Shown: positions 3,907-31,754 of the stretch, one piece after another
How the letters are laid out: each line of letters starts with the position of its first letter
Numbering within the stretch: the first letter of the stretch is position 1
Assembly (NCBI GenBank): GCA_038496445.1
Contig: JALMLS010000621.1
Span: 112,064-176,063, forward strand
Length of the DNA stretch: 64,000 nucleotides
DNA from: Trichosphaerium sp. ATCC 40318
Lineage: Eukaryota; Protista; Tubulinea
Reading direction: 5' to 3'
Position numbers and translations under genes: made by a program
Notes under the pieces: model-generated
The model's input: only the letters and a program-made list of their open reading frames with translations
Database searches by the model: none
What the model was told of the DNA's origin: nothing

Positions 3907-6900
3907 ATGTTTCAAAGCGAAGCTCCTATGCTTACACTGTTAGCAACGCTGTTAATTCTGTGTAGAGTTAACGCTCAAATAAGCGGTATAGTATACCGTG
4001 ACTATGATTTTGACGGCAGAAGAGACGCTCTAGAGCCAGGTATGTAAGGTAACAATAGGCTAATTAACTTTCCGGAGGTATCTCTATGGTGGATCTTGAC
4101 CTTTTCGACGGCAACAATATGAATGTTGGATCTGCTACAACCGATTCCAACGGCGCCTACAGCATTTCAGTTGTAGCTGGTAAACCCGTTTTGTCACGTG
4201 ACACCAAATATTTTTAACTTTGGTTAGGAGTGTACAGACTAGAAGTATCGAACAGTCCAGCACTGTTCACCCATTCCTCTTCAACGAACAATGACGGAGG
4301 ACCTGTTTTTTCAACAACACATGTATTTTCGGCTCCTACAACTAGTGCTGATATTCCTCTATCTGCACCTCATGACTATTGTGTTGGTGATATTGTAGAT
4401 GGAGTCAGAGCACAATTTGATGTCGTCACCACATGCTTTGTAGCAGGTTAGTTGAACTGTTCGCTTCTCGCAAAAAGTTCTAACAATTACTGGGTAGGTG
4501 ATCAAACTACTGCGGAGTCAACGATAGTTTTAAAACCAAACACTGCCGGCACAATGGACTTTTTTGATTTTGCAGCCGGTTCAGAAGATTTTACAACGGA
4601 TGTATGTACAGATGTACAGACAGGACCTGTTTGGGGGGTTGCCTATTCACGACTTACAAGGCAGTTATATCTAAGTAAGTCGCCACCATGCAGAATGATT
4701 ATTTGGGCTTATACTAAATAGGTTCGTTTCAAAAGACGCATGCTGGGTATACTGTTGGTCAGACACCATCCACCATTTATAGGCTTGACACTAGAGCCGG
4801 AGTAACATGTAACATTGTACAGAACATTGACATGGCAGCGTTTGGATTCCCGGCTACTGACTTGGCGCCGAACCAATTGCATAATGTCGCAGACTATTCA
4901 ATTGATTCAATTGCTATACCGCTTATTGGCAAGCATGGGTTCGGGGCTATGGATATAAGTGATATCGAAGACTTCCTTTACGTTGTAAACTTATTTTCCA
5001 GGACAGTTATTCGTATTGGCCTTGGTACGCAGCCTCACGGTTTTTTTTTTGGTGTTCTCAGCTTTCAAACAAAAACCCAAAGTCCGTATCTTGTAAATTT
5101 TAAATCACACTCTTTTTAGAAGTCTCTGCCATGCCTAGACTTATCGAAGCGAGTGATATCATCGCAAAAGCTATACCGGATCCAGGTACAAACAAAACCC
5201 CACATGTTAGCTCGCGCACCTTGATAAACACGTTTTAGGTGCATCATGTGTATTTGATATGGCAACGCCTGTTAACGTATTGAACTTGAATGTTCGCCCT
5301 TACGCCATTAAGTGCGTCTTTTATTTTTTTTTACTAACAACAATACCTTATAAACGCTCTAAAAGCACTACAAACCATGTTTGTTTGCTACCTGAAAACA
5401 TCAAGTTTTGTTCAAAAACAAAACATTTTGGCTAACAAAAGACCGTATTTAGATACAATGAGGGTGTCTTATACCTCGGTATGGTTTGTACTGCCGAAAC
5501 AACTAATTTGCGCTCTGACTTGAGGTACTACGTGTACACTACTCCAGCAGACGACTTTGGTGCGCCTGGGCCAGTAACTTGGACCAAGGTAAATTTTAAT
5601 CTTTTCTCTTCATTTTGAAGTTCGCTAAGCGTTTTAACATTAGATTGTGGACGAAGGAATGGACTACGATCGTCAACCTGCTCTGCAATGTGGTTCCTCA
5701 GGTATCCCAGCCCAGGAGCATATTCAATGGAATGCATGGACGGAAACTTTTTTAGCTCCTGAATGTTTCGAAGAAGGTACTGTATCTCTCCTTTTGGCTA
5801 TTAACACCTAGCTTTTTTTTTAATTTTATCACGTGACTTTTTTTTTTTTCAAATTTTTTCTCAACCTATGATTAGTGGCACATCCGCAACCTATACTAGC
5901 AGGCATTGAGTTTGATGAAACAGGGAACATGATTCTGGGATTTCAAGATAGATTTGGAAGTCAAGCAGGAGATTATAGTGTCGACGTAGTTGGCGATATT
6001 GGCGGGGACGCACTCTGTTTTTCATACGACAGTGGCAATGGTACTACACACATTTATTAGATCTGTTTGAATAATTTTTACCGTTGACGCGTTGTGTAGA
6101 CATTTGGATAAGAGAAAGTGGACTTGGTGGTCCCGCAACTTGCGGTAGTAACACAGCAAATATAGCAAGTGGTCTTGGACCTGATGGCGGCAGTGAATTT
6201 TTCTACGGTGACGTTTACACTGATTCTAATGGCGCCGGCTTTCATCAAGAAACTTTTCAAGGTGGCTTGGTAACTGTTCTTGGTGGGTATCTTTTTCACA
6301 ATTTTATTATTTTTCTTTTTTCAAGGCATCACCAATATTGGTTGATTTTTACTCTTTGATTTCTTCTTTCGTATTTTATTATTATTTACAATGAGTTTGG
6401 TATACATACATTATTACGACTTCTAAATTAAATCATATGCTGAGCCTTTTTTTTTTTCAATAATTATTTTCCAATAAAATCTGGTCTGATTGAGTATAGG
6501 AACTGGCGAGCTTATAATGCCAGCGATGGACCCTCTTGATGGAAATTCCGGTGCTTTCTCAGGTGGTATTACAAATCAGCAGTCCAGGTATTTTTATACA
6601 TGGTTGACTAGCTTGGATTAGACAGTTACTCTGTATCTGAAAAATAATTTTATTTACGTTTTAACTACAACACATCTACTCTGTATAGCCAGAATTTAAT
6701 TTTTCAGAGTAAACGTATAGGATCAATCAAAAACCAACCTTTATTTTTATCGAAATACAGAGTAAACTTACAGAATCAATCAGTATTTTCTCTTAATATT
6801 TTTGACAAAATTCAGGGATGGACAAAAAGTACTTTCCTATCTATTATATACAGGCGGCAATACTGGTATTTTTTTTGCGAAATCTACAGGTGTGGGGGAG

Positions 6901-9900
6901 GTAGAACCAATATGTGATCCTCCACCATCACAAATCGGCAACTACATTTGGATTGACACTGATTGTGATGGTATTCAAGATCCAAACGAGTCAGGTCCTG
7001 ATGGCGTCATTGTTACGTTAAATCGTAATGACGGTAGCCCATTAGTAACTTCAGTTACTTCGAATGGCGGGTGCGAACACTCTAAATATATTATTAAATA
7101 TGTCTCTTACTTTACACCAGCTACTTTGGATTGACATCTCCTGATCCAATATTTTCGCCTGTCAGTTGGACAATTACCGTGGATATGACACAAGCAAACT
7201 TACAAATGCCTGACGTTTCTAATTTTGTGTCAGCATTGAACGCTGGAACAAATGATCGTCATGATAACGATTTTGTATTAGGTGTCAATGCTGTAGCGTC
7301 CGTAGATGTTTTAGTACCTACAACAGGGTACAGAAATCACAACATTGATCTTGGGGTTTGTCATGGAATACCACCAACGACGTTGCCACCAACGACATCG
7401 CCACCAACTACAGAACCACCGACAACCGAGCCACCAACAACATCGCCACCGACTACAGAACCACCAACAACCGAACCACCAACTACTGCGCCGCCAACAA
7501 CTGAGCCACCAACTACTATGCCCCCAACCACAGAACCACCGACAACTATGGCACCAACACGTGCGTCTAAAAATAAAAATCAATATTGATTTTTTATCAA
7601 TTAAACAAAATACTTAGATCCGCCTGTACTCATTGGTGATTATGTGTTCCTTGATGTTAACAATAATGGCATACAAGGTACGCTACTTTAGGTCCAAGAC
7701 AACTAAAATATTAATAGATGCTGGTGATGAACCTATTCCTGGACGTATCGTTGTTATTATTGATCTGTTAGGTGTAGAAATTGAAAGAACTACAACAGAT
7801 ATGTCTGGCTTGTACTATCTGGATGATAATGCTCTTGATCCTCTTACTGAATACTCCGTGTGCATACCTGTTCTTGCTGGCGAGATTTTATCACCAACAA
7901 GAGTTGGCTCTGATATATCCATAGACTCTGATGGTACTCAAGGCAGCTACGACTTTGATGGCGATTCTACATCTGATTTCGCATCTTGTCGCGACATTCG
8001 CACTCCTGCCTTCAAAATCAGTGACTTCACACTTGATTTCGGTATTGTTCGACCTCAACAAGCTCTTGGAGATCAAGTATTTTTGGACGAAAATAGAAAC
8101 GGCATATTCGGTACATGCAATAAAACCAAAACACGTGATTAAAAGGATTGTTCTCACATTTTTCTTGATTTAGATATGGGTGACACACCAATTAACGGTG
8201 CAGATATTGTTTTGTTGGACATGAATGGTATGAGAGTAGCCATCACGTCTTCAGATCCAATGGGTATCTTTACTTTCGATACAATGGATGGCGTACTGCC
8301 TGACACCTCATACACCATTTGTGTTCGCATACGCATGTTCGATGAGCCAACTGCGATAAACGCTGGTGTAGACGATAACATCGACTCTGATGGCGTGTTG
8401 AGTATGGCTGACTTTACAACACCTCCTAATGGCATGACTGAACCGGCTTCATGTGTTGGTATTGTACGTGCTATTAAACATCAACTTTTCACTCACAAAA
8501 GTTGTTTAGATGTCTCCTGCTCTGGGTATTGACAATCGAACAATCGGATTTGGATTTATCATCATGCCAGTGGCTATTGGCAATTACGTGTTTTTTGATG
8601 TGAACGCAGACGGTCTCCAAGATGGCACAGATATTCCTGTTTCAATGAGAACTGTTGTCGTACTTCTACCTGGTGGCACTGAAGTATCAAGAACAACAAC
8701 TGATATATCCGGTGCATACTCATTTGCAACACCTTTAATAGAACCAGCAACAGATTATCTTGTTTGTGTACAACTCATCACAAACGAAGCTTCAACTTCA
8801 ACAACTGCGGGTATCGATTCCACCATCGACTCTGATGGCAGTGACTCCATGTTTGATTTTGATGGAGACATGATGGGTGATCCAGCATCTTGCACATTAA
8901 TTGTACGTTAATAGTTCATTTTCACTCAGTTCTAACAATACCCACAGAGATCACCAATACCAGGCCAGACTGATATTACGATCGATTTCGGTTTGTTGAC
9001 ATTAGACATCGAACTCGGTGATTATGTGTTTTTCGATACCAACAGAGATGGTATTCAAGGTAAACAGAAAAATAATTATTGTTATCAAAACAAAATAACA
9101 TGTGCTTAGATATGACTGATGTTCCAATCATTGGTGCCACTGTGGTGTTAATACAGGGTGGACTGGAAGTCAACCGCACTATAACAGACTCGGACGGGCT
9201 GTACTTATTTAACACAATGTCTGGTGTTGAAGCTAGCATGCCATATGTGATTTGCACTACGATTAGAGCTGATGAAGAACCCACCACTGCCAATCAAGGT
9301 CCCTCGGATATGCGTGATTCAGATGGATTCATTGACTCATATGACTTTGATAATGACATGGTGCTCAGACCTGCATCGTGCGCTAGTGTCGTAAGCTGTT
9401 TTATAAAACTGACTTTATTTGTATTAAGTATTTTGTCTTAGACTGCACCGTTATTAGACGAGTCCGATCTAACAATAGATTTTGGATTTGTTGCTCAAAC
9501 CATCACGATGGGTGATAGAGTCTTCTTTGACATCAATAACGATGGCATTCAAGGTACAATTAAAAATGCAATTTTGATTGAATGTTCTTTTTTATTTTTG
9601 TCACTTATGAACGTTTAGATTCCGGTGATGTTCCTGTTCAAACTCGCACTGTCGTTATATTTGAGACTGGCGGTAGCGGCCTTGAGATTGCTAGAACAAC
9701 TACAGACTCATCTGGATTGTTTACATTCGACACTTTTGATGGCATTAGTCCAAGCACACTTTATACCATATGTGTACAAATCGTATTGGGAGAGCTACCA
9801 ACAACAGCGAACCAAGGTTCTGATGACATGATTGATTCTGATGGTAGTTTATCATCCTTTGATTTTAACATGGACACAGTTCAAGAAGACGCCAGTTGTG

Positions 9901-12900: not shown

Positions 12901-15900
12901 ACCTTGTACGACCTATTTTTTTCTTACTTAAAAGCACTTTAGTTGATTATTTTATTTTTTAGGTTTCACCTAGTACTGGCATGTCTAACATGAACTATGA
13001 CTTTGGTTTTATATCTCGAACTATTACCATAACCCCTAATGTGTTTTCTGATGCCGTCAATGAAAATGGTATTCAAGATGCCATGGATTCTCCTCTTCCT
13101 GGACGGAATGTGGTCATACTACTTCCTGATGGAACAGAGATTGTACGACGTATGACTGACAGTATGGGCATGGCAACGTTCGGTACAGCAGACGGTCTTC
13201 TCCAAACAACGCAATACATCATGTGTGTCGAACTGTTGATCACAGAATCTTCAACCACCATAAATGTTGGTGCTGACGACACTATCGATTCTGATGGTGA
13301 TTCTCGTACTTTTGACTTTAACATGGATGGTTCAAACGATCCTGCTTCATGTGTTGATTTTGTACGTCTTTTTACCTTTTGGTCTTATTTTATTAATCTG
13401 ATTTAGACATCGCCTATGCCTGGCGTTACTGACGACACCATTGACTTTGGCGTGGTGACACCTGAGATTGTCATTGGCGATCTTGTCTTTTCTGACGTGA
13501 ACACGAACGGAATTAAGGGTACCTGTCTTAGCTCAACTTTTGCTTGCAAAAATAACACCTCTGCACTTTAGATCCTTCTGATCCTGGCATTGCATCTCAT
13601 CCAGTTGTGTTACTTAGATCTGATGGCACTGAACTTGTTCGTACAATGACAGATTCAATGGGTATCTACTCATTCACAACTGCTGATGGTCTTCTCCCAA
13701 ATACAGCTTACACTCTATGTTCTCCAATCATACCAAATGAAGAAGTCGCTTCTCCAAATCAAGGAGCAAGTGATGATAATGACTCTGATGGTATTTTCAA
13801 TACTGCGTTTTTCGATTTTGATGGAGACATGATATTTGATGATGCTTCATGTATTTCCATCGTACGCCACACCAAACGAATAACTTGGGTATTCCTACTA
13901 ACAACTCTTCAACAGACATCACCTGATCTTGGTGTTACTGACACATCTCATGACTTTGGTTTCACCAACATACTCATTACAATCGGTGATTCCATCTTCC
14001 TTGACAACAATCGAGACGGTATCCAAGGTAAACGTTGTACTGACTAAATGATTACAAATCTAAAATTGTTGTTTAAGATGGTGGAGACACACCAATCTCT
14101 GGTGTAGACGTTGTTCTACTATTCAACAATGTCGAAGTCTCGCGAAAAACAAGTGATCTATTGGGTACATTCATCTTTGACTCGAACGATGGATTGATGC
14201 GAGACACACAACATACAATTTGTATTGAAACTCGAAACGGAGAACAGCCCACAATCGATAACCAAGGTGGAGATGATACTGTTGACTCTGATGGTATGGT
14301 ATCTACCTTTGATTTCGATGGAGACTTGGTCCCTGACAGCGCTTCTTGCGCTATTCTGGTACGATTTATTGTAAAAAAAATCAAACAATTGTTTATTCTC
14401 GTTCTTTATTTGTTTCTTTAACACTCTTGTGTTTTTTTAGATGTCGCCTTCGACTGGATCAGACTTGACTTTTGATTTTGGATTTGTACCTCAAACAGTA
14501 GCGATTGGAGATCGCATATTTTTTGATGTTAACCAAGACAACGTACAAGGTACGAAACAACTCTATTCTATAAAAAGTGAATTTGTCACTAAAAATACAA
14601 TCAAAATAGACGGTGGTGATATTGGTGTTCCATCACGACTTGTTGTCTTGTACAGAGTAAGCGATGGGTTGGAAGTAAGACGAGAATTTACTGACAGCTC
14701 TGGTGCATACTCTTTTGACACTTTTGATGGTGTTCTTCCCAATGTGCAGTACACTGTATGTGTTCCTATTCTCGCAAACGAGCGTGGAGCAGATCCAAAC
14801 GCAGGATTGGATACCATTGATTCAGATGGACTTGTACAAATCATAGACTTTGATGGTGACGGTGTCCTTGATGCTGCTTTGTGTGCTGATGTTGTACGTA
14901 TAATTGTTTGGTTTGATATTTTCTTAAATGACGCCGTGTGTAGGCTTCTGGACCGCCAGGCACTGTTGATGATACAATCGATTTTGGCGTTGTGACTTTG
15001 GATCAGTTCCTTGGAGACTTTGTATTCTTCGATGCAAACGGAGATGGCTTACAAGGTACCCAATATTTGCCTTTTCATTTAAACTTACAATGTTCAAGAC
15101 ATTGGAGATGTACCAGTTTCTATGTATCCTGTAGTTTTATTGGATACCTCTGGTGGTGTGGTTACTACGACCAACACTGATATGAACGGGTTTTATAGTT
15201 TCCAAACTTCTGATGGTGTAATGCCTGATACGGATTATATCATTTGTACTGAACTACCTCCAACTCAAGATCCTGCGACTATTGGTCAGGGTGGAGACAT
15301 CACCATTGACTCTGATGGTACCATAACTACCATTGATCTCACATCTCCGCCTGATGTAACCCTTGAGAGAGCTTCTTGCGCCTCTTTTGTACGCTATCTA
15401 TTCAGTTAATTTTCATCACTAACCTGTACTAGACATCACCAAGTGCAGGGTTTTCGAATACTGACATTGACTTTGGATTTGTGACTCAACCAATCACAAT
15501 CGAAACATTTGTATTCTCTGATGTCAACGACGATGGACGTCAAGATGCTGGTGACTCTCCAATACCATCCAGAATTGTTGTGATCACCCTTCCTGATGGT
15601 GTCACTGAAATTACACGTACCACCACATCAAGTGGAGGTATCGCCACATTCACCACATCTGATGGCATACAACATGACACACCATACATTCTTTGTGTTG
15701 AAATGGTGGCCGCAGAAGATTCCGCCATGTTAAACATCGGATCAAACGATCTCGATTCTGATGGTGATTCTCGTACTTTTGACTTTAACATGGATGGTTC
15801 AAACGATCCTGCTTCATGTGTTAACATTGTACGTGCAGTTCTTGACTTTATATTTCTTACGTATAGTTTAGGTATCGCCATCACCTGGCATGACACTTGA

Positions 15901-18900
15901 CACATTTGACTTTGGTCTTGTTACGCCAGAAGTAACAATCGGAGACTTTGTATTCTTTGATGTGAACAGAAACGGCATTCAAGGTAATCTACCGTAACCA
16001 AAAATCATGTTAACATCATCTTTAGAACCCTCAGACACAGCCATAACATCTCATCCAGTTGTGTTACTTAGATCTGATGGCACTGAACTTGTTCGTACAA
16101 TGACAGATTGATGGGTATCTACTCATTCACAACTGCTGATGGTCTTCTCCCAAACACAGCTTACATCCTGTGTTCTCCAATCAGACCAAATGAAGAAGTC
16201 ACTTCTCCAAATCAAGGAGCAAGTGATGATAATGACTCTGATGGTATTTTCAATACTGCGTTTTTCGACTTTGATGGAGATATGATATTTGATGATGCTT
16301 CATGTATTTCTATTGTACGTCGCCAAACAAATGTAACTTTGAATTATTTGACTTACAACTCTTAACAGACATCACCTGCTCTTGGTGTTTCTGATACATC
16401 TCATGACTTTGGTTTCACAAACATACAAATCGTTTCAATTGGTGACACGTTGTTTCTCGATAACAACAGAAATGGTCTCCAAGGTAAGACCTTAGTTGGG
16501 CGAAGTCAATGAGTACCAACCCTTTCAAATAGACATGGGCGATAACCCAATTATCGGATCAACAGTAGTACTAACCCAAGGTGGAACTGAAGTTTCACGA
16601 GCAACAACAGACAGCATGGGAACCTACATATTCGATACATTCGATGGCGTTCAACCTAACGTCGATTACATAATCTGTGCTGCTGTACAAAGTGGTCAAC
16701 AAGTCACTGCTTTTAATCAAGGCGATGACACTTTAGATTCAGATGGTACAGCCAGTATGTTCGACTTTGATGGAGATATGGTTACTGACCCAGCCTCTTG
16801 TGCTGCTGTTGTACGGACTAGTTTTAGTATAGTAGTAGAACAAATGTGATATCTAACGTCACGTGATTAGACTGCACCTGCAATAGGAAGCTCAGACCTT
16901 ACAATTGACTTTGGGTTTGTACAACAAACAGTTGAAGTCGGTAACAGAGTGTTTTTCGACATAGATAACGATGGCACTCAAAGTACGACTATAAATTGAT
17001 ATGACCCTTTTCGTTGTAGTAACTGATTTAACAGGTGTTGGTGATGTCCTTGCTCCTTCTAGAGTTGTAGCAATATCACGTACCAGCGATGGTATTGAAG
17101 TCGCACAAACAATTACAAACGTTGCTGGAAGCTATACCTTTGACACTCTAGCTGGTGTCCTACCAAGCACAGCATACACTATTTGTGTACAACTCAATGT
17201 TGGCGAAATACCGAGTATGGAAAACATTGGATCAGATACTGCCGATTCTGATGGTATTCTGAGCTCTTTTGATTTTGATGGAGACGGTACTCAAGACCTT
17301 GCATCTTGTGTTGACATGGTAAAGCTATTATTTTGTGTTGCTAACACTAATACCATTTTCTAGATCTCTCCACCTCTTGGCATTAACGATTTATCTCATG
17401 ATTTCGGTATCATTACTCTCAGTTTGTTTGTTGGAGACTTTGTCTTTTTTGATGCAAATGGTGATGGTCTACAAGGTGCGTAATTCAATGTTGTGATTGA
17501 CTTTGTTCTCAATTTATTCGCAATTAGACGGTGGCGACACTGGAATCTCGTCGAACTTGGTTGTACTCTTTAGAACAAGCGACCTATCTGAGGTTGCACG
17601 TCAAAATACTGATCCTATGGGCGGTTATATTTTCACAGCAGCGGATGGCCTTCTTCCAGACAGGAGTTACACCATCTGTACTGAAGTTAGCCCAACTCAC
17701 AATCCAACAACCAGTGGTCAAGGTGGAGACAATGCCATCGACTCTGATGGTGCGATTACTGTTATCGATCTAACATCACCTCCTGATGGTACACTTGAGA
17801 GAGCTTCTTGCGTTGAGATTGTACGTATGTTATGTTTAAACCAGCCGCTAATGTTCTGTTAAAAAAGACGTCACCAAGCCAAGGAATGTCAGACCTCAAT
17901 GTTGACTTTGGATTTGTGACTCAACCAATCACAATCGAAACATTTGTATTTTCTGATGTAAACGATGATGGACGTCAAGATGCTGGTGACTCTCCAATAC
18001 CATCCAGAATTGTTGTGATCACCCTTCCTGATGGTGTCACTGAAATCACACGTACCACCACATCAAGTGGAGGTATTGCCACATTCACCACATCTGATGG
18101 CATACAACATGATACACCGTACATTCTTTGTGTTGAAATGATGATCACAGAAGATTCCGCCATGTTGAATACTGGATCAGATGATCTTGATTCAGATGGT
18201 GATTCTCGTACTTTTGACTTTAACATGGATATTACAAACGATCCTGCTTCATGTGTCAACATTGTACGATAACATTCACTTTACAACCGAATATCTAACT
18301 CGTGATTGTGCTTTTAGGTATCGCCATCACCTGGTGCAATACTTGACACCTTTGACTTTGGCCTCGTTACTCCAGAAGTGACAATCGGAGACTTTGTATT
18401 CTTTGATGTAAACAGAGACGGCATCCAAGGTACTAATCTGCTTACTACAAATTTCATACTTAGGATCATTCTTAGAACCCTCAGATACACCTATCACATC
18501 TCATCCAGTTGTATTACTGCGAAGTGATGGCACTGAACTTGTTCGTACAACGACAGATTCGATGGGTATCTACTCATTCACAACTGCTGATGGTCTTCTC
18601 CCAAACACAGCTTACACTCTATGTTCTCCAATCAGACCAAATGAAGAAGTCACTTCTCCAAATCAAGGAGCAAGTGATGATAATGACTCTGATGGTATTT
18701 TCAATACTGCGTTTTTCGATTTTGATGGAGATATGATATTTGATGATGCTTCATGTATTTCCATTGTACGCCGGCACAAAACCAACATTCAAGTTTCTGG
18801 GTTTTTACTAACAAGTTATTCAGATATCGCCTGGTCTTGGTGTTTCTGATACATCTCATGACTTTGGTTTTGTAAATAACTTGACAGTATCGATTGGCGA

Positions 18901-21900
18901 CTCATTATTCCTCGATAACAACAGGAACGGCATTCAAGGTAAGTACCAATGAGGCTCGAAGAAAAATATATTGATTCGGCTTTAATCGCTTTATATAGAT
19001 GGTAGCGACGATCCAATTCCAAATGCAATCGTTGTTTTGTTGACCCGTTCTGGTGTCGAAGTTGCTCGCAAGATCACAACTGCAACTGGAAATTACATCT
19101 TTGATAATTCGGACAGCCTTCAACCTTCGAATAACTACATCATCTGTTCTTCGGTTCGCAATGGAGAACAACCTACCACTGCACTTCAAGGTTCTGACAC
19201 AACAATTGATTCTGATGGCACGCTTGACACGTTTGATTTTGACGGAGACAATTCTCTCGATCGTGCTTCTTGCGTTGACATCACATCACCATCTGGAGGA
19301 AACACCGATTTGACAATAGACTTTGGATTTATTCCTCAGACCATTGCTGTTGGAGATTCTGTTTTCTTTGACAACAACGAGAATGGCATTCAAGGTAACC
19401 TCTCCGTGTGCTTTACTCAAACTAATGTATTCTCAAAGATGCTGGAGACTTACCGTCTGGAACTCGCACTATTGTGATCATACGACAAAGCGATAATGCT
19501 GAAGTATCTCGCACTGTGACAGACTCAATGGGTCAATACAGTTTTGATACATTCGATGGTATTCTTCCAAACACAAACTACAGAATCTGTATCCCTCTCA
19601 ATGTTGGTGAACTGCCTTCGATAACAGGTCAAGGTGACGCTACAACAGATTCAAATGGTGTTTCAAGCTCATACGACTTTGACATACCTCTCAATGGTCC
19701 AGATCCAGCTTCATGTGCTTCAATTGTAAGTAACTAGAAGTGTTCAGGTTTTTTGTTAGAAATACTGACACAATGTAGACCACACCTGCTCTTGGCATCA
19801 TTGATAACACCGTGGACTTTGGTGTTGCAACTCCAGATCAATTCATTGGAGATTTTGTGTTTTTTGACGCAAATGGCAATGGCATTCAAGGTAACTATTA
19901 CACTTTTCATACGCAGTAACCAATCTCTTACCGCCACTAGATATGAATGATACACCACTTGGTGGCATACTTGTTGTGTTGTTCGATGGAAGTGGCAACT
20001 ACATTACTGAAACAAACAGTGATGGCACAGGCGCTTATTCATTCAGCACGACAGAGGGAATACTACCATCAACGCCATACATGATTTGTGTTGAAGTACC
20101 ACTTCAAAACAATCCAACAGCCACTGGTCAAGGTGGAGACAACACCATCGACTCTGATGGAAGAATAACTGCCATTGATCTCACATCACCTCCTGACAGT
20201 ACCCTCGAGCGATCTTCTTGCTTTTCCTTTGTACGTTACCTCACTTTAGACGCATTATTTCAAATATTCAATATGTAACATGTGTCACTAGACAGCACCA
20301 AGCACGGGAGTGTCAAACACTAACATTGATTTTGGATTTGTGACTCAACCAATCACAATCGAAACATTTGTATTCTCTGATGTCAACGATGATGGACGTC
20401 AAGATGCTGGTGACTCTCCAATACCATCCAGAATTGTTGTGATCACCCTTCCTGATGGTGTCACTGAGGTTACACGTACCACTACATCAAGTGGAGGTAT
20501 TGCCACATTCACCACATCTGATGGCATACAACACGACACACCATACATTCTTTGCGTTGAAATAACGATCACAGAAGATTCAACCACACTCAATACTGGA
20601 TCAGATGATCTCGATTCAGATGGTGATTCTCGTACTTTTGACTTTAACATGGATGGTTCAAACGATCCAGCTTCATGTGTTAACATTGTACGTGTACTTA
20701 GATGCTAAATATTCAATCTATACTTACCTAAGTAATCCAGGTATCACCATCACCTGGTATGACACTTGACACCTTTGACTTTGGTCTCGTTACTCCAGAA
20801 GTGACAATTGGAGACTTTGTATTCTTTGATGTCAACACAAACGGTATTCAAGGTAAAGGTGACTTGTTAAACACATTTTACTAAGTCAGGATAGAACCAT
20901 CGGATATGCCTATTACATCTCATCCAGTTGTATTACTGCAAAGTGATGGTACTGAACTCGTTCGTACAATGACAGATGCGATGGGTATCTACTCATTCAC
21001 AACTGCTGATGGTGTTCTTCCAAACACAGCTTACATTCTGTGTTCTCCAATCAGATCAGGAGAAGAAGTCACTTCTCCAAATCAAGGAGCCAATGATGAT
21101 AATGACTCTGATGGTAATCTCATCGTTTCATTTTTCGACTTTGATGGAGATATGGCACTTGATGATGCTTCATGCATCACAACGGTACCCTTTATTTTTC
21201 CTCATATTTTAGTTCTAACAAGTGTTCTTGTAGACATCACCTGCTCTTGGTGTTTCTGATACATCTCATGACTTTGGTTTTGTAAATATCTTGACAGTAT
21301 CGATTGGTGACTTATTATTCCTCGATAACAACAGGAATGGTATTCAAGGTACTCGCAAAACACAAACTGAGTGACGTTAATATTGCTATAGATGGTGGTG
21401 ATGACCCTATTTCAAATGTTGAAGTTGTTCTATTGACACGTTCTGGTGTTGAAATCGCTCGCAAGATCACCACCGGCACAGGCAACTACGTTTTTGATAC
21501 ATTTGACAATGTTCAACCTTCAACAGACTACACTATTTGCACTGCAATCCGAAACGGAGAACAAGTCTCTATGATCAATACAGGATTAGATGATACCATA
21601 GATTCTGATGGAACAACCAGTATTTTCGATTTTGATGGCGATTCAATTGTCGAACCGGCATCTTGTGTTGACATCACATCGCCTGCTCTCGGTACTGTAA
21701 ATTTAGATGTAGATTTCGGATTTGTTCCTCAAACCATTGTTGTTGGAGATTCTGTTTTCTTTGACAACAACGAGAATGGCATTCAAGGTACGCTTCGAAT
21801 ACCTTTTACAGTTTTCAAGAGCTCAATATATTTTTAAGATGCTGGAGACTTACCGTCTGGAACTCGCACTATTGTGATCATACGACAAAGCGATAATGCT

Positions 21901-24900
21901 GAAGTATCTCGCACTGTGACAGACTCAATGGGTCAATACAGTTTCGATACATTCGATGGTATTCTTCCAAACACAAACTACAGAATCTGTATCCCTCTCA
22001 ATGTTGGTGAACTGCCTTCGATGACAGGTCAAGGTGACGCTACAACAGATTCAAATGGTGTTTCAAGCTCATACGACTTTGACATACCTCTCAATGGTCC
22101 AGATCCAGCTTCATGTGCTTCAATTGTAAGTGACAATACTGTTTAAGTTACAAATGCTAACACTATAGACCACACCTGCTCTTGGCATTATTGATAACAC
22201 CGTGGACTTTGGTGTTGCAACTCCAGATCAATTCATTGGAGATTTCGTGTTTTTTGATGCAAATGGCAATGGCATTCAAGGTAAGAATACACAACATATC
22301 CTTATCACTAAAATAAATAGATGCCTCTGATATGCCTCTTGATGGAATATCTGTTGTGCTCTTTGACAACACAGACATGCCAATTAATCATATTACAACA
22401 AATGCAATGGGAGAGTACCTATTTGGTACTCAAAATGGCGTTCTACCGTCGACAACATACACAATTTGTGCTCAAATACCAGATGGCAACGATCCAACAT
22501 TACCAAATCAAACAACCGAAGATCTTGACTCTGACGGTGTCTTGCGTAACATCGACTTGTCGGCAATACCCGATGGCATTACAGAACGTGGATCTTGCGT
22601 TGCCTTTGTACGTAACTTTATTTATGTTTTGGCTCTTTACTCACGTGTTTGTTTAGACATCACCAAGTGTTGGTGTATCCAACTTAAATTACGATTTCGG
22701 GTTTAGAAACCAACCTGTGACTCTTGTCATTACTGCATTTAACGATGATAACAACAACAATATTTTTGATCTTAGCGATGCTCCAATCCAGAACAGAAAT
22801 GTTGTAATAACTGACTCTTCCGGTACAGTTGTCTCAAGGACAACAACAGACTCTTCAGGTGGTGCCACATTCGATACTTCAACAGATGGCATTCAACCAG
22901 GCACATCATACACCATTTGTATTGAAGTGCTCCCTACTGAGCTTCTTGTGAACCCTGATGCCGGTCCTGACACTGTTGATTCTGATGGAGATTCAAGAAC
23001 TTTCGATTTCAACGTTCCTCTTGATGGTACACTTGAAACAGCTTCTTGTACAGACATTATCTCCCCTGGACCTGGCATGACTGATAACACAGTTGGATTT
23101 GGTACAATAGTCGGTATCACCACTCTTGGTGATCACGTGTTCTCTGACGACAATTCAAACGGTATTCAAGGTACTACACAACATCCAGTTCCTTCCTTTC
23201 CTGACTGTACTTTGTAGATCCATCCGAAAACGGTATTACCAACCAAGACGTTGTGTTATTGCTTCCAGATGGTACTTTCGTTGCTAGCACAAGAACTGAT
23301 GGCAATGGCGACTTTTCGTTTACAACAACAGACGGTGTATTGCCAGATACAATGTACCTCATTTGTGTGGCTATACCACCAAGTACAGAACCAAGTGTTG
23401 CCAACCTCGGAGCAAATGAGACAACAGATTCCGACGGTACTCAGAACGATAACATTGCAGACTTTAACAATGACAATATTAACGATCCGGCATCTTGTGC
23501 TCAAATAGTACGCTTTGTTTTTTTATGAAGCATCTTTTTTGATTTAATTCAATAGCAATCACCTCCTCTTGGTGATACAAACAACGATGTTGATTTTGGA
23601 TTTTCAACAGTTCAAACAATAATGATTGGAGATTTTGTGTTTGTTGACGCCAACCAAGACGGCATTCAAGGTATGACATCTTTCTTCAAACTTTCTTAAA
23701 CATAAAATTTCTTACGTTTTACTAGACGGTAGCGATTTGCCTATCGTTGGTGCCACAGTAGTTTTGTTAAATCTTGCTGGTAACGAAGTCTCAAGAAAGA
23801 TAACAGACGGCAGTGGTCGTTACATGTTCGAGACTTCAGACAATGTTCAACCAAGTACAACATACAGAATTTGTTCATCAATCCGACCAGGAGAGCAAGT
23901 CACCGCTGATAACCAAGGAGACGATTCTCAAGATTCAGACGGAACACTAAGTTTGTTTGACTTTGATGGAGACTCAGTTCCTGAACCGGCGTCTTGCACA
24001 ATTATCGTACGGTTTTGATTTGAATCACTTTTTTGTTTGGTTGTATTGTTAAGTTTTTTTTTTCTTTAGATTTCTCCAGTTCTCGGAAATACAGATGTCA
24101 GTGTTGATTTTGGATTCATACCTCAAACTGTTGAAATTGGAGATCGAGTATTCTTTGATACAGATAACGATGGCACTCAAAGTACTATTGCAAACAAAAA
24201 ATTTGTCAAGCACTTAATTAACTTATTTTCAAGGTCCTGGCGATGTGCTTTTAGATTCACGCCTGGTAATTATCGCACTTGCTTCAACACGTACAGAAGT
24301 CGGTCGTGTGACTACTGGCAGCGCAGGAGAATACATTCTCGACTCAACAAATGGCATTCAACCAAACACACAGTACATTGTGTGTACTCCTCTTCAACCG
24401 GGTGAAATATCAGCACAAGCAAATCAAGGTGTCAACGATGCCATTGATTTTGATGGTCAAGACAGCTCGTTTGACTTTAATGGAGACTCAATTGAAGAAG
24501 ATGCTTCTTGTGCTGTGATTGTACGTTTCAAAAACACAACAACATGCAATTGTTCTAAGATGTTTGTTTAGACCTCACCATCACTTGGATCTACGGACCT
24601 CACAGTAGATTTCGGAATAATCACTCCACCTTTGTTTATTGGTGATTATGTCTTTAATGACGTTAACAGAGATGGCACTCAAGGTACAACTCTAGAAACG
24701 AAAGAGTTTAATTTAACTTTGCGCACAGATTCTGGAGATACAGGCGTAGCAAACCATCCAGTTGTCATTCTACAATCAGATGGCACACACTTGGCTACAA
24801 CAACCACTGACTCAAGTGGTATCTATACGTTTGGAACAAGTGATGGAGTCCTTCCACAAACGTTTTACATCATTTGTACTCCAATTCCAGCAGGCAACGA

Positions 24901-27900: not shown

Positions 27901-30185
27901 TCATTATTCCATCTACAATTGGTAACCTTCTTTTCTTTGACACAAACGGAGACGGCGTTCAAGGTACACTTACTACCTAGTCACACCCCTTCGCTAATCT
28001 TTTTTTTCAACTAGATCCTTCAGAACCGCCAATTGGTAATGCAACCATTCTTTTATTCCTTAATGGAACACTTGTGGACTCAACAGTTAGCGATCAAGAT
28101 GGTGGCTACAACTTCACCCAACTGATCCCTGATGCCACTTACGATGTTTGTGTACCTTTTGGAAGTCCTCCTTTGCTCTTCCCATCTCCAACAAATGCAC
28201 CTGCACCTGTTGGATCAGACTCTGATGGAGTACCAATGTACGGGCAAACACAATAACTATGCTGTTGTACTTATCATTTTTAAGGATGATCGATGTTGAT
28301 GGTGATGGCATCCTTGAAACAGATGCAGCTTGTGCATCGGTTGTACCTGGATCAAACGAAACTGATATATCGACAGTTGTAGACTTTGGGTTCCTACCAG
28401 ACTCTGTTGAACTTGGAGACTCAATCTTTTGGGATATCAATGGCAATGGTATACAAGGTACAAGACCATTGATTGAACGACAATTTCTTACTGTTTGATG
28501 TTTAAGACCCTGAAGATACCGGTATTCCTGATATTCAAATCGTTGTTCTTGAAAACAACATGTTCTATGCTGTTACTACAACTACAAGTACGCTTGCTAG
28601 ATAATACCATGACCACCAAGTACTCATATAAACTTTCTAGCCGGTGGTAACTTTAACTTTACAACACCTGACCATGGCATCTTCCCAAATACTGAGTACA
28701 CCATTTGTGTGAATGTCACGTACGCCCTTTTTTCTTGATGTCAGTGCCTCATATCTTTCTAGTGATACAGGATTTCAACCTACACTCTCGGGTCAAGGTG
28801 GGGATCCTACCACGGATTCTGATGGAGGTCCTATTCAATCTATTGACGTCTTCGGTGATGGCATTTTATCTGAAGTGTCTTGTGCTACATTGACAACAAG
28901 AGCACTTCCTTTTGAAGACAACACAATTGATTTTGGCCTATTCCTTGTTCCTGACATGGCACGTATGCCTGAAATCGTTAGTCCAACAGGTGGTATTGTT
29001 GTTATCTTACAGGTACGCAACATCGACGCACCCTAAAAGCAACATAGTACTCATTTTTGTTCTTTTTAGGATGGCATTACGTTGAATAAGCAACTTGTTC
29101 CTGACGGTGTCATTCAAGTCAGTGTCGACACTGTAAATACAGACGAAGTTACTTTCGAATTCTCTCTTGATGGATCTTCATTCACAGACACTTCTGGCCC
29201 TATCTTCACGTCTCAAAATGTCACTTTATTAACAGGTACCTTTAACAACACAGCTAGTAAAAGCAAATGGCTCACACATGTTTTAGAGCAATTCATCAAC
29301 ATCACAATAACATTGCGTAATACCACGACCAACAGAGAAACCGTATTTAGCTTCACATTCCGTTGTGTAAACCCAGGTATCTCTGGTGACCCTCACTTTG
29401 TTGGATTCAATGGACAGAAATTTGGTACGCTTTTTATCAACCTCATGCTTTACTTCTTGAACACTCGCTGATGTACCTCATAGATTTCCATGCAAAGCCA
29501 GACATATACTATGCCATCATTAGCGACAACAATGTGGCTGTAAACTCTTTATTTGTACACGCTGATCTCCGCGAAAAGAGTAACAAAACATACATGGGTC
29601 AGATCGGTATTATCCTTGGAAATGACAGATTGTTTGTATCATGTGATCGTAATAATCTGTCTCATCGTATTGAATTCAATGGTGGACCACTTGCATCAGG
29701 GGCGAGAAAGACACTGAGCTTGGGAAAACTGAAAAGATCAAAAGCAAACAATGATCGCATTCAAGTCATCACTCAGCACTACAGAATCTCTGTCAGATTC
29801 TCATCTTCATCACATAGTACCTGCCATCTGAATATGAGAACCAAATATAACGGCGATAAACGTGCTCTAAAAGACCAACCACACGGTACGTTTACAGCAA
29901 CTGCCTCTTATAGAATCTCCGTTTTGTTTCTGACTTCTTGATGTAGGTGTTCTTGGACAAACAGCTTGGAAAGAAGTTGTAGAGATAAATCATCATGGTA
30001 TAAATGGAGAAGGTGTTATTGATGGTAAATGGAAAGACTACGTACTTCGTAACATATGGGACACCAACTTCAAATTTTCAAAGTTCAAGCATATCGATTA
30101 TGCAAGACTCAACGCCAAAAGCAAAAAGCCGTTCAAGCTTCCTGACTATGACTCAACCACCTCGCTAGACGGTTTTGTAGAGTAA
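3907..30185 (+). CDS. Giant secreted repeat protein (about 7000 aa by estimate, about 90 or more introns): signal peptide, bacterial-type adhesin head, PT linker, about 44 tandem SdrD B-like domains, C-terminal GDPH/Root_cap-VWD-like domain
   Basis: Signal peptide MLTLLATLLILCRVNA|QISG. A chain of GT-AG introns links the exons in frame. Recurring motif IGDFVFFDxNxDGIQD...T.TD..G.Y.F...Y.IC...DSDG...ASC...DFG. Stop TAA at 30183-30185. One frameshift at ~16109. Confidence 0.9.
3976..7370 (+). other. N-terminal head of the giant protein, similar to bacterial 'SdrD B-like domain-containing' surface proteins
   Basis: ISGIVYRDYDFDGRRD, GPVWGVAY, GKHGFGAMDIS, LYLGMVCTAE, HPQPILAGIEFDETGNMILGFQDRFGSQ, EFFYGD, HQETFQGG, FAKSTGVGEVEPICDPPPSQIGNYIWIDTDCDGIQDPNE. 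This motif order is recalled from Bacteroidota/Chloroflexota/Actinomycetota proteins. Confidence 0.75.
7371..7560 (+). repeat. 15-nt coding tandem repeat, 12 x PPTT(E/S/A/M/L), mucin-like linker
   Basis: Read directly as ccaccaacNacNNNN units. Confidence 0.95.
7618..28950 (+). repeat. Array of about 44 SdrD B-like domains (~135 aa; ~480 nt including two introns) with a ~2.4 kb 5-domain super-period
   Basis: Counted 44 starts of the (I/V/L)GDxVFxDxNxDG(I/L)Q type from 7630 to 28457. The variant lacking the GIQ intron recurs at ~10545, 13030, 15497, 17933, 20357, 22720 and 25128. Confidence 0.9.
29370..30185 (+). other. C-terminal GDPH-containing VWD/Root_cap-like domain of the giant protein
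   Basis: ISGDPHFVGFNGQKFDFH...YAIISDNNVAVNSLF...TYMGQIGI...CHLN...PHGVLGQT...GVIDGKWKDY...FKFSKF. No TM helix or GPI signal follows. Confidence 0.75.
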
Positions 30186-30795
30186 ATAACAACCCACCGT
30201 GATGATAACACGTGATAGACAGCTAGAAAATAAAAGTTGTCATTTTTAAAATCATACGCTGTAGCAAGCTTTTTTGTTTTTCTTCGTGTTCAAAGTACTA
30301 TTCTATACACTTACATCCTCAAGATGAAAATAACAGTTCACCTAACTTGTATACTCTAACAATATTTTATAATAACAGTCAACAAGGGCTAAGGAGAAAT
30401 AGTACAAAGCAACTTTACAATGGCAAGTAGACTCACATGAAAAATAACGTGCAACATTTATGGATTAAGGCTTTTTATTAACAAAAGGCGATACGCTACA
30501 GAATAACCTGTCACGCACACACACAATACGATCAAGGAAACAGAAAACACCTAAAAATTAAAAAAAAGTAATCCAAAAAAAAAAAAAACTAGGTCTAGCC
30601 CTTTTGGTTCGTCCCACAATCCAAAACCAACAAGGGCACCCGTTAAAAACATAAATATAGAGAGAAATGAGGGACGACCTTTGGTTCATACCACAACCCA
30701 AAACCAAAGATCCCACCTACAATTAAAAAAAACTCTCTGAAAAAAAACTCCTTTGCCAAAAACAATGGCATCTCCAAGAGATTCTACACCGACCT

Positions 30796-31754
30796 TCAGT
30801 CATACGCTAATGAGATGAACTCATGTTCCATCAAATCCGACGCACTCTGATACTCGGCTGATGGTTCCAGGCAAGCCTTAACAAAATCAACCAGCAAGCA
30901 CTCATCGTGGTGAAGCGAGTGCTCAAAGCGTTTCAGGAATACTTCCTTCAACTTTTGAAAGCAGAGGCGATTAACCTCGAACTCACCTTCACCAGAGTAC
31001 TCATCGCACGGCACGTATTCGTCGCCTAATGCGATACGCATTGTCGTCACACCGACTGCGTAAAGGTCATTCTGCGTTGTGTACCCTCTGCGCTCAACAG
31101 AAGGCAACACATAACCAGGAGTGCCTTTAAAGGTTTTGAGCTTTCTGGTATCCTTTACATACCCAGAAGCGCCAAAATCAGTGAGCATTATGTCCATTGA
31201 GGGGAACACCAAGATGTTATCCGGCGTGATGTTGTTATGCACTACACCTTCTCTGTGCAGTTGTGTGAGTGTAGATAACGTACTCTCAGCTACTACCGCT
31301 ACAGTGTCGATCGAAGGATTGGCAAACACATCCAACACGGACCCATAAGCTCTGGGCATTGCTATCGCAACTCCATGGTCACCACTCAGAAACTTCAAGG
31401 GTTTGACAACGCCTTTACACTTGAGACTGCTTGCGAAGTCATACTCGCGCTCCTAGAGAAGTCGAGTAAGTATTTGTGCCGGTTGGTGTAAAAATAAAAA
31501 ACCTAAAAGGAAAAAGTGCTTACAAGTGCCTCAGCGTCCTCCTCATACTCATCTGTGCTTCTATTAGCCGTTTCGATAATTTTGAGAGCTACACTCTGTC
31601 CATTATCATTTCGTCGCGCTTTTAACACACGACACCTCTCACTACTTCCCAATGGCTTTGCCGACATTATCGTCGCCCAACCCGTACCTTGTAAAGTACA
31701 CTTTCTGTACGCAGTTCTAGCAAAGCGAGCTATCGTTCGGAATAAATTGGCCAT
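30796..31754 (-). CDS. Ser/Thr-kinase-fold protein, probable pseudokinase, 2 exons (intron 31453-31523)
   Basis: VALK, DFG, GTPGY and DLYAVG are present. The catalytic loop reads HNNITPDN, APE is replaced by LPS, and the Gly loop is degenerate. Confidence 0.85.

Follow-up and report, generated by a model that had tools for sequence, protein, structure and literature searches.

How can the exons of a repeated gene be nearly identical, synonymous sites included, when the introns between them do not even align? This question is raised by a 64-kb stretch of DNA of the protist Trichosphaerium sp. ATCC 40318 (the window), which makes up the last 64 kb of a 176-kb contig (JALMLS010000621.1, or C129) in an assembly of 70 Mb. 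It carries a giant gene, G1, putatively encoding a secreted repeat protein with an array of domains, part of which is organised in five-domain super-repeat units called U2 to U5 (Table 1). A usual domain is encoded by exon A, of ~287 nucleotides (nt) and starting in phase 1, followed by exon B, of ~112 nt. The 69 introns of the array are 40-86 nt long (median 50) with donors that are mostly GTA(C/A)GT, and 17 of its 86 intron slots are intronless. Our comparisons of exons and introns, all made within this one assembly, show exon-limited concerted evolution of two successive exons, E4 and E5, of units U4 and U5: the exons were homogenised and the introns were not.

The initial annotation had counted two differences in 287 nt between the two copies of E4 (19439-19725 and 21839-22125) and three in 112 nt between those of E5 (19779-19890 and 22169-22280), and had noticed that the preceding exons also agree over their final ~60 nt. 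These counts stand. One of the two E4 differences is synonymous and the other exchanges Ile and Met, and there is a single difference in the last ~57 nt of the exons preceding E4 (to 19394 and 21787). The exons that follow E5 (19941-20230 and 22321-22607) are ~60% identical. The introns before, between and after E4 and E5 are 0.61, 0.64 and 0.52 identical between U4 and U5. These values come from gapped global alignments, so that allowing gaps did not make the introns align, and they lie within the null given by 10,585 intron pairs (median 0.53, 99th percentile 0.67) and under the 99th percentile of 0.65 obtained when intron interiors were shuffled and splice ends kept. To call these introns unrelated was nevertheless too strong. 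They have counterparts at the same position of a second gene that are up to 0.94 identical. Among the 69 intron pairs formed by the two genes, diverged ones look by eye like old homologues with many insertions or deletions (indels) and substitutions in mid-intron, and 46 keep significant local similarity of the interior.

This second gene, G2, came out of a genome search with the 287-nt exon E4. Of the five copies that the search yielded, two belong to G1 and the other three lie ~50 kb upstream on the minus strand. G2 is collinear with G1, introns included (at 90% identity along a stretch of 15.1 kb and 89% along one of 12.6 kb), and holds one 2.4-kb unit more. It provides an outgroup for the genealogies of both exons and introns of G1. 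The five genomic copies of E4 are 95-99.3% identical and all distinct, with 2-14 differences spread along the exon; those of U4 and U5 are 99.3% identical to each other and 96.2-96.5% identical to their G2 orthologues.

Exons and introns have conflicting histories. When the five copies are aligned, the three introns hold 33 parsimony-informative sites that group the copies by position (25 common to U5 and G2 copy c, eight to U4 and G2 copy b), whereas E4 and E5 hold none, and few sites are common to other combinations; the next exon has 42 positional sites. In quartets that combine a pair of G1 units with their orthologues in G2, E4 and E5 gave seven sites grouping the copies by gene and none by position, the two introns flanking the pair gave 12 positional sites and none by gene, and the intron between them gave no informative site. 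The introns thus keep the positional genealogy, whereas in E4, E5 and their partners it has been replaced by sites that group the copies by gene, which supports the exon-restricted gene conversion proposed by the initial annotation. Its argument that a recent duplication would have copied the introns is also borne out: with G2 as outgroup, a simple recent duplication is excluded, because the introns of U4 and U5 have different orthologues in G2. The junction at which G1 and G2 differ by one unit falls in the exon tail preceding E4 (19335-19394): U4 matches G2 copy a on the upstream side, and its introns match copy b on the downstream side. This deletion of a unit in G1 relative to G2 is ordinary unequal crossing-over, and it also accounts for the match over the final 60 nt of the exons before E4.

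Could the contrast arise without any exon-specific process, simply because selection conserves the exons and tiny introns become unalignable through fast indels? Indels do dominate intron divergence, several diverged orthologous introns partly realign when long gaps are allowed, and saturated introns of 50 nt would not be surprising next to exons that are 85-93% identical. The comparison of synonymous with intron divergence, suggested by the initial annotation, gives another picture of the island. Analysing exons singly and summing synonymous counts without joining exons, we found a proportion of synonymous differences (pS) of 0.04-0.16 among the five copies, and of only 0.014 between E4 of U4 and U5. 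Overall, pS between the two units is 0.014-0.04 next to introns that cannot be aligned, yet the same introns keep orthologues in G2 at 0.85-0.94 identity and so are not too fast to retain signal. The GC content of third codon positions (0.306) is close to that of intron interiors (0.295); hence codon bias does not explain the low pS, and nothing indicates that synonymous sites are under selection. In addition, introns with equal flanking pS separate into two classes: where this pS is below 0.08, ten introns are at least 0.85 identical, six are below 0.70, and none is between. Together with the conflict between exon and intron genealogies, which argues strongly against it, these results make an explanation by selection and fast introns alone highly improbable.

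Among the 69 introns of G1, 33 have a best match of at least 0.85, almost always with the positional orthologue in G2 (five pairs are 100% identical), 16 have one at 0.70-0.85, and 20 have no match of at least 0.70 in either gene. Paralogous introns within G1 are at null similarity, as one would expect if introns had been gained independently in each unit after the expansion of the array and had never been homologous. We regard this as scarcely credible: the position and phase of introns are identical at two sites per domain across ~90 domains of three genes, one paralogous intron pair of G1 and several of G2 keep similarities of 0.72-0.96, and the parallel gain of introns slot by slot would be much less parsimonious than duplicating a domain in which two introns were already present.

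The homogenisation of exons is local and not array-wide. Over all slots, exon quartets gave 5547 positional sites and 94 by-gene sites, and by-gene signal was found in only three places: the E4/E5 island, the class-a exons starting at 13572, 16026 and 18476, and the class-e region (15433-16368 and its partners). The last two include the two further exon sets in which the initial annotation saw the same pattern. The pattern is there, but it is weaker: the class-e stretches 15475-15828, 17908-18263 and 20333-20687 are 92-93% identical, the class-a stretches 13593-13861, 16047-16314 and 18497-18765 are 95.5% identical, and the introns flanking both sets are 0.50-0.73 identical. The patchwork tract it described was confirmed as an exact run of 71 nt shared by 13285-13355 and 15752-15822. 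More broadly, 21 pairs of paralogous exons of G1 are at least 80% identical, and 33 of the 35 intron pairs flanking them are below 0.70, with none reaching 0.85.

In such an array one must also consider that short reads mis-mapped among repeats during assembly or polishing inflated the apparent similarity of the exon copies. Repeats abound in the array, and the break of the frame by one base at 16108 could have arisen in assembly. Neither a search of a metagenome collection with a 24-mer internal to the exon nor an exact look-up of the product gave a match, although both resources may omit the records of this genome. Yet the five copies of E4 are distinct and have variants common to every combination of copies (a and b, b and c, a and c), unlike a collapsed consensus. 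There is just one frame break in the ~90 domains of G1 and G2, the contrast between exons and introns is seen again in G2 and in a third gene, which lies on a different contig, and neither by-gene sites nor gradients at exon edges are expected from mis-polishing. An artefact of this kind is thus very unlikely.

Which process homogenised the exons and spared the introns? On balance, the array probably undergoes concerted evolution by ectopic conversion templated by DNA, within and between the two giant repeat genes. Ectopic gene conversion, with occasional unequal crossing-over, would use the genomic DNA of paralogous repeats as template. If recombination requires near-identical sequence, the 40-86-nt introns, which would be unconstrained and rich in indels, may in many cases have drifted beyond the limit and act as insulators, so that conversion tracts would start and end inside single exons or runs of exons. 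Purifying selection would keep exons similar enough to remain within the reach of conversion, and they would be homogenised again and again, including at synonymous sites. Such feedback could produce a mosaic with two states, where stretches are either nearly identical or free to diverge, and where introns are either carried along or left out. Our comparisons show the conflict of exon and intron genealogies, the two intron classes and the effects at edges, and from these we infer the recombination mechanism itself, i.e., the repair of breaks by copying within homologous stretches and the rejection of mismatched pairing. No new mechanism has to be invoked for these data.

The initial annotation had suggested another template, spliced RNA or complementary DNA (cDNA). 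A transcript of the gene, or its reverse transcript, would pair with a paralogous repeat and correct its exons across junctions, with the introns looped out and kept. Several observations fit. The island consists of three exon pieces that are adjacent in the messenger RNA (mRNA); the two diverged introns between them are not part of it, and its end falls on an exon junction. Precisely intronless slots exist (17 of 86), and their state varies between units, since the intron at 14359-14440 has a counterpart in U3 (16811-16870) and is absent from U4 and U5. Finally, pS is far under intron divergence, an argument that was applied to cDNA donors of fungal ribosomal-protein genes (bioRxiv 10.1101/751792).

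Other results fit poorly with a spliced template. Conversion mediated by cDNA is expected to delete introns, yet the presence or absence of introns differs between G1 and G2 at none of the 86 slots, despite widespread exchange, and the introns within the E4/E5 island are kept in all five copies. Identity also leaks into the edges of introns. In 24 positional intron pairs below 0.70, the perfect match running from the junction into the intron averages 5.4 nt on the 5' side, against 3.7 nt in unrelated introns of the same type (p=0.004), and 5.1 against 2.8 nt on the 3' side (p=0.0003); it often extends over 7-19 nt, the longest runs being 14 and 19 nt. Exons in turn diverge towards their edges. 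In orthologous pairs, the density of mismatches in the 20 nt beside a diverged intron is 6.7%, against 3.8% in the interior (p=0.007), whereas beside conserved introns it is 3.8% against 3.0% (p=0.21). Such a gradient would be expected if flanking homology is needed, and a seamless spliced template would not produce it. Likewise, short exons enclosed by two diverged introns were not converted together with their neighbours: none of six has a pS below 0.1, against 12 of 20 other short exons (p=0.017).

Moreover, many exchanges brought introns along. Orthologous introns are often as similar as their exons, and intron pairs within G2 are 0.89-0.96 identical; these other exchanges clearly carried whole introns at the DNA level. 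At the slot 15829-15871/18264-18317/20688-20740, the closest G2 introns are one or two units out of register, supported by 14 and 11 sites: the G1 intron at 15829-15871 matches the G2 intron one unit along, and the one at 18264-18317 matches those one unit back and two along. Such shifts of register imply unit-shifted exchange of DNA between G1 and G2. Taken together, these tests make genomic DNA, limited by intron heterology, a better candidate for the template than spliced RNA or cDNA, and the latter part of the initial proposal was not upheld: intron state is alike at 86 of 86 slots, identity enters intron edges, divergence rises at exon edges, and introns moved with their exons. We therefore consider a spliced template unlikely as the source of exon homogenisation, although, given the modest samples, an event templated by RNA may occasionally have taken place.

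Several points weigh against the DNA-templated conversion that we prefer, and the E4/E5 island is foremost among them. Its three pieces (~57, 287 and 112 nt), contiguous in mRNA, have similar divergences of 1-3%, and it leaves out two fully diverged introns and stops precisely where an exon meets an intron. Three separate events or more, or else pairing across heterologies of 50 nt, would be needed for this if the template were DNA, and an exon of 112 nt is short for independent conversion. Furthermore, short introns remain homogenised in a published model except when tracts are short (bioRxiv 10.1101/2025.10.29.685298). The samples behind the edge tests are modest (p = 0.004-0.017), and part of the effect could stem from divergence that varies between regions. 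Finally, the raised GC content at silent sites that is left by biased conversion was not seen when third codon positions were compared with introns, but this does not exclude conversion, as the feature is common and not obligatory. That single events copied the exon-only island from a spliced transcript or its cDNA and left the recipient introns in place seems quite unlikely. If it were true, it would be a case of RNA-templated gene conversion without intron loss in a giant repeat gene of a protist.

The comparison of G1 and G2 gives a broader view of the exchange. Amino-acid identity is 46-66% in the heads of the two proteins and 86-96% in their tails. In the stalk, 81 orthologous exon pieces have a synonymous divergence (dS) of 0.148 and a nonsynonymous divergence (dN) of 0.029, hence a dN/dS of 0.20, and the pS of single exons spans 0 to 0.36, so that exchanges of different ages form a mosaic. 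The stalk was either homogenised after an old duplication or copied later onto a different head; the diverged heads and the dS of the stalk fit the former. The idea that conversion shuffles segments of a surface protein found no support: the process homogenises, and dN/dS between the genes is low. A foldback mis-assembly of G1 and G2 was considered and is unlikely, because the arms are ~10% diverged and separated by a unique spacer that bears genes.

Other features of the G1/G2 pair are worth recording. Two G2 introns (C129:86761-86814 and C129:81760-81806, minus strand) begin with GC (GCACGT...AG) where their G1 orthologues begin with GT; they are either rare GC-AG introns or introns with mutated donors. 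A protein-kinase fragment at 30473-31314, with a kinase-like open reading frame (ORF) on the minus strand (30796-31398), was duplicated with the gene and is 94.6% identical to the fragment on the G2 side. The latter lies ~7.6 kb further from the end of its gene, which suggests an insertion there.

Other genes of the family were found only on two contigs, C72 (~159,000-199,000; loci L008-L010) and C57 (~78,000-85,500), and are giant genes with SdrD_B repeats. In the gene on C72, the units comprise four domains and measure 1.87 kb, and a domain contains fewer introns. The exon pieces of its adjacent units have a median identity of 0.88, and 34 of their 46 intron pairs are below 0.70 while ten are at least 0.85, the same two classes, nearly identical or unalignable, as in G1 and G2. 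We sought an outside donor for the diverged introns, but no intron of G1 or G2 matches them, and the genes on C72 and C57, at 67-78% identity, are too distant to be the donors.

The structure of G1 was drawn from ORFs, their translations and an exon map. Profiles built from trusted exons were searched exon by exon, and exon ends were snapped to GT/AG in the correct phase. The predicted order is a putative signal peptide near 3907, the head, a Pro/Thr-rich linker, the domain array and a C-terminal region. Three unsplit exons match the Pfam family PF17210 (SdrD_B) with 39.3-45 bits (cut-off 29.7), split exons taken alone score under this cut-off, and the family has 146 matches genome-wide. A sequence search of the PDB with the SdrD_B-like domain gave no match at E-values up to 0.01. 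The linker (7300-7560) is mucin-like, with PPTTEPPTT repeats, and lies between the head and the first domain; the similarity between G1 and G2 rises there from ~70% to ~90%. The C-terminal ORFs (29082-29941) have no match in Pfam, and one contains a GDPHF motif that presumably resembles the autoproteolytic GDPH site of VWD-type domains. The frame break at 16108, whose G2 orthologue is intact, is either real or a single-base error of the assembly.

Table 1. Coordinates of the homogenised exons, their introns and the genes that contain them (positions in the window, except for G2, which is given in contig coordinates).
Feature	Position	Strand	Basis and remarks
Exon E4 of U4, homogenised	19439-19725	+	Partner 21839-22125, 2/287 nt differ; no positional and 4 by-gene informative sites
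Exon E5 of U4, homogenised	19779-19890	+	Partner 22169-22280, 3/112 nt differ; no positional and 3 by-gene sites
Exon E4 of U5	21839-22125	+	Pairwise counts against U4
Exon E5 of U5	22169-22280	+	Identity island stops exactly at the 3' end of E5
3' exon tail of U4	19335-19394	+	Near-identical to U5 21728-21787 and to all three G2 copies (five-copy alignment)
Intron before E4, U4	19395-19438	+	Nearest is the G2 copy-b intron (0.70); 0.61 to U5 21788-21838
Intron between E4 and E5, U4	19726-19778	+	0.94 to G2 copy-b orthologue; 0.64 to U5 22126-22168
Intron after E5, U4	19891-19940	+	0.85 to G2 orthologue; 0.52 to U5 22281-22320
Intron before E4, U5	21788-21838	+	0.92 to G2 copy-c orthologue
Intron between E4 and E5, U5	22126-22168	+	Two indels in common with G2 copy-c intron (0.69)
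Intron after E5, U5	22281-22320	+	15-nt deletion and 16 informative sites in common with G2 copy-c intron
Class-a exon	13572-13861	+	With 16026-16314 and 18476-18765; 95.5% within G1, 88-91% to G2 orthologues; quartets 10-11 by-gene, 1-5 positional sites
Class-e unsplit exon	15433-15828	+	With 17868-18263 and 20292-20687; ~91% identical overall, partly by-gene signal
Short conversion patch	13285-13355	+	71-nt exact match to 15752-15822; exons otherwise 60% identical; ends 6 nt before exon end
Intron of U2, variably present	14359-14440	+	Also in U3 (16811-16870); precisely absent at U4 19282/19283 and U5 21675/21676 (unit alignment, exon map)
Five-domain super-repeat units, ~2.43 kb each	U2 13572-16025, U3 16026-18475, U4 18476-20894, U5 20895-23217	+	Repeat spacing of 2400-2455 nt, unit alignment, slot indexing
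Frame break	16108	+	One base missing relative to other copies of the exon, in-frame TGA; unit alignment, hidden Markov model (HMM) match split over two frames
Gene G1, putative giant secreted repeat protein	3907-29941	+	ORFs, translations, exon map; start and end inferred
SdrD_B-like domain array, ~43 domains	7620-28943	+	Pfam PF17210 and HMM-guided exon/intron map
Gene G2, mirror-image paralogue, ~48 domains	C129 ~71,800-100,500	-	Upstream of the window, in head-to-head orientation to G1; loci L001, L002, L004, L005, L007

The homogenisation of exons beside diverged introns is already documented, and G1 is a new and unusually dense example of it. One feature is unusual, the role of very short introns as insulators. 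The closest precedent for the mechanism is found in the tandem HMA4 paralogues of Arabidopsis halleri, where a model of divergence-dependent conversion and purifying selection yields a mosaic of exons and introns (bioRxiv 10.1101/2025.10.29.685298). In both systems exons are homogenised, synonymous sites included, some introns escape and keep the true history of duplication, and conversion falls with divergence. But in HMA4 only introns of at least 1 kb escape, while those under 150 bp stay homogenised, whereas introns of 40-86 nt escape in G1. Furthermore, exchange takes place here largely among the repeats of one gene and between two inverted genes, with ~90 domains, in a protist. Introns this small would suffice to insulate neighbouring exons from each other's conversion; published models assume that such introns are dragged along. 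The ~150 introns of the two genes, and more in the third, would offer a dense readout of the homology needed for recombination in this organism.

In paralogous ribosomal-protein genes of fungi, exon-only concerted evolution was ascribed to cDNA donors because dS is below the rate of intron divergence (bioRxiv 10.1101/751792). G1 resembles these genes in that synonymous divergence is well below intron divergence and that coding sequences, and not introns and flanks, are homogenised. The fungal inference, however, was made from dS and intron rate alone, whereas in G1 the retention of introns, their edges, the gradient at junctions and the co-converted introns point to a DNA template. The MaSp2 silk genes of Argiope are also giant genes with tandem coding repeats delimited by short introns and homogenised within the gene. 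Yet the iterated introns of a silk gene share 94-99.7% identity and have been proposed to promote homogenisation (PLoS Genet 2022, PMC9779670), the opposite of G1, where paralogous introns are at null similarity and appear to limit it. An opinion article has proposed that introns limit the identity between duplicates (PMC9220161). A practical consequence for giant repeat proteins is that trees of repeats made from exons or proteins can mislead, while tiny introns hold the true history of duplication.

As for the protein, the match to PF17210 and the long tandem stalk behind a distinct head, in a protein predicted to be secreted, liken it to the B-repeat stalks of bacterial SdrD and other MSCRAMM proteins. 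Unlike bacterial SdrD, G1 is eukaryotic and rich in introns, and its ~43 domains are arranged in five-domain super-repeats. In this adhesin-like stalk some positions are kept uniform and others diverge, while the heads of G1 and G2 have drifted far apart.

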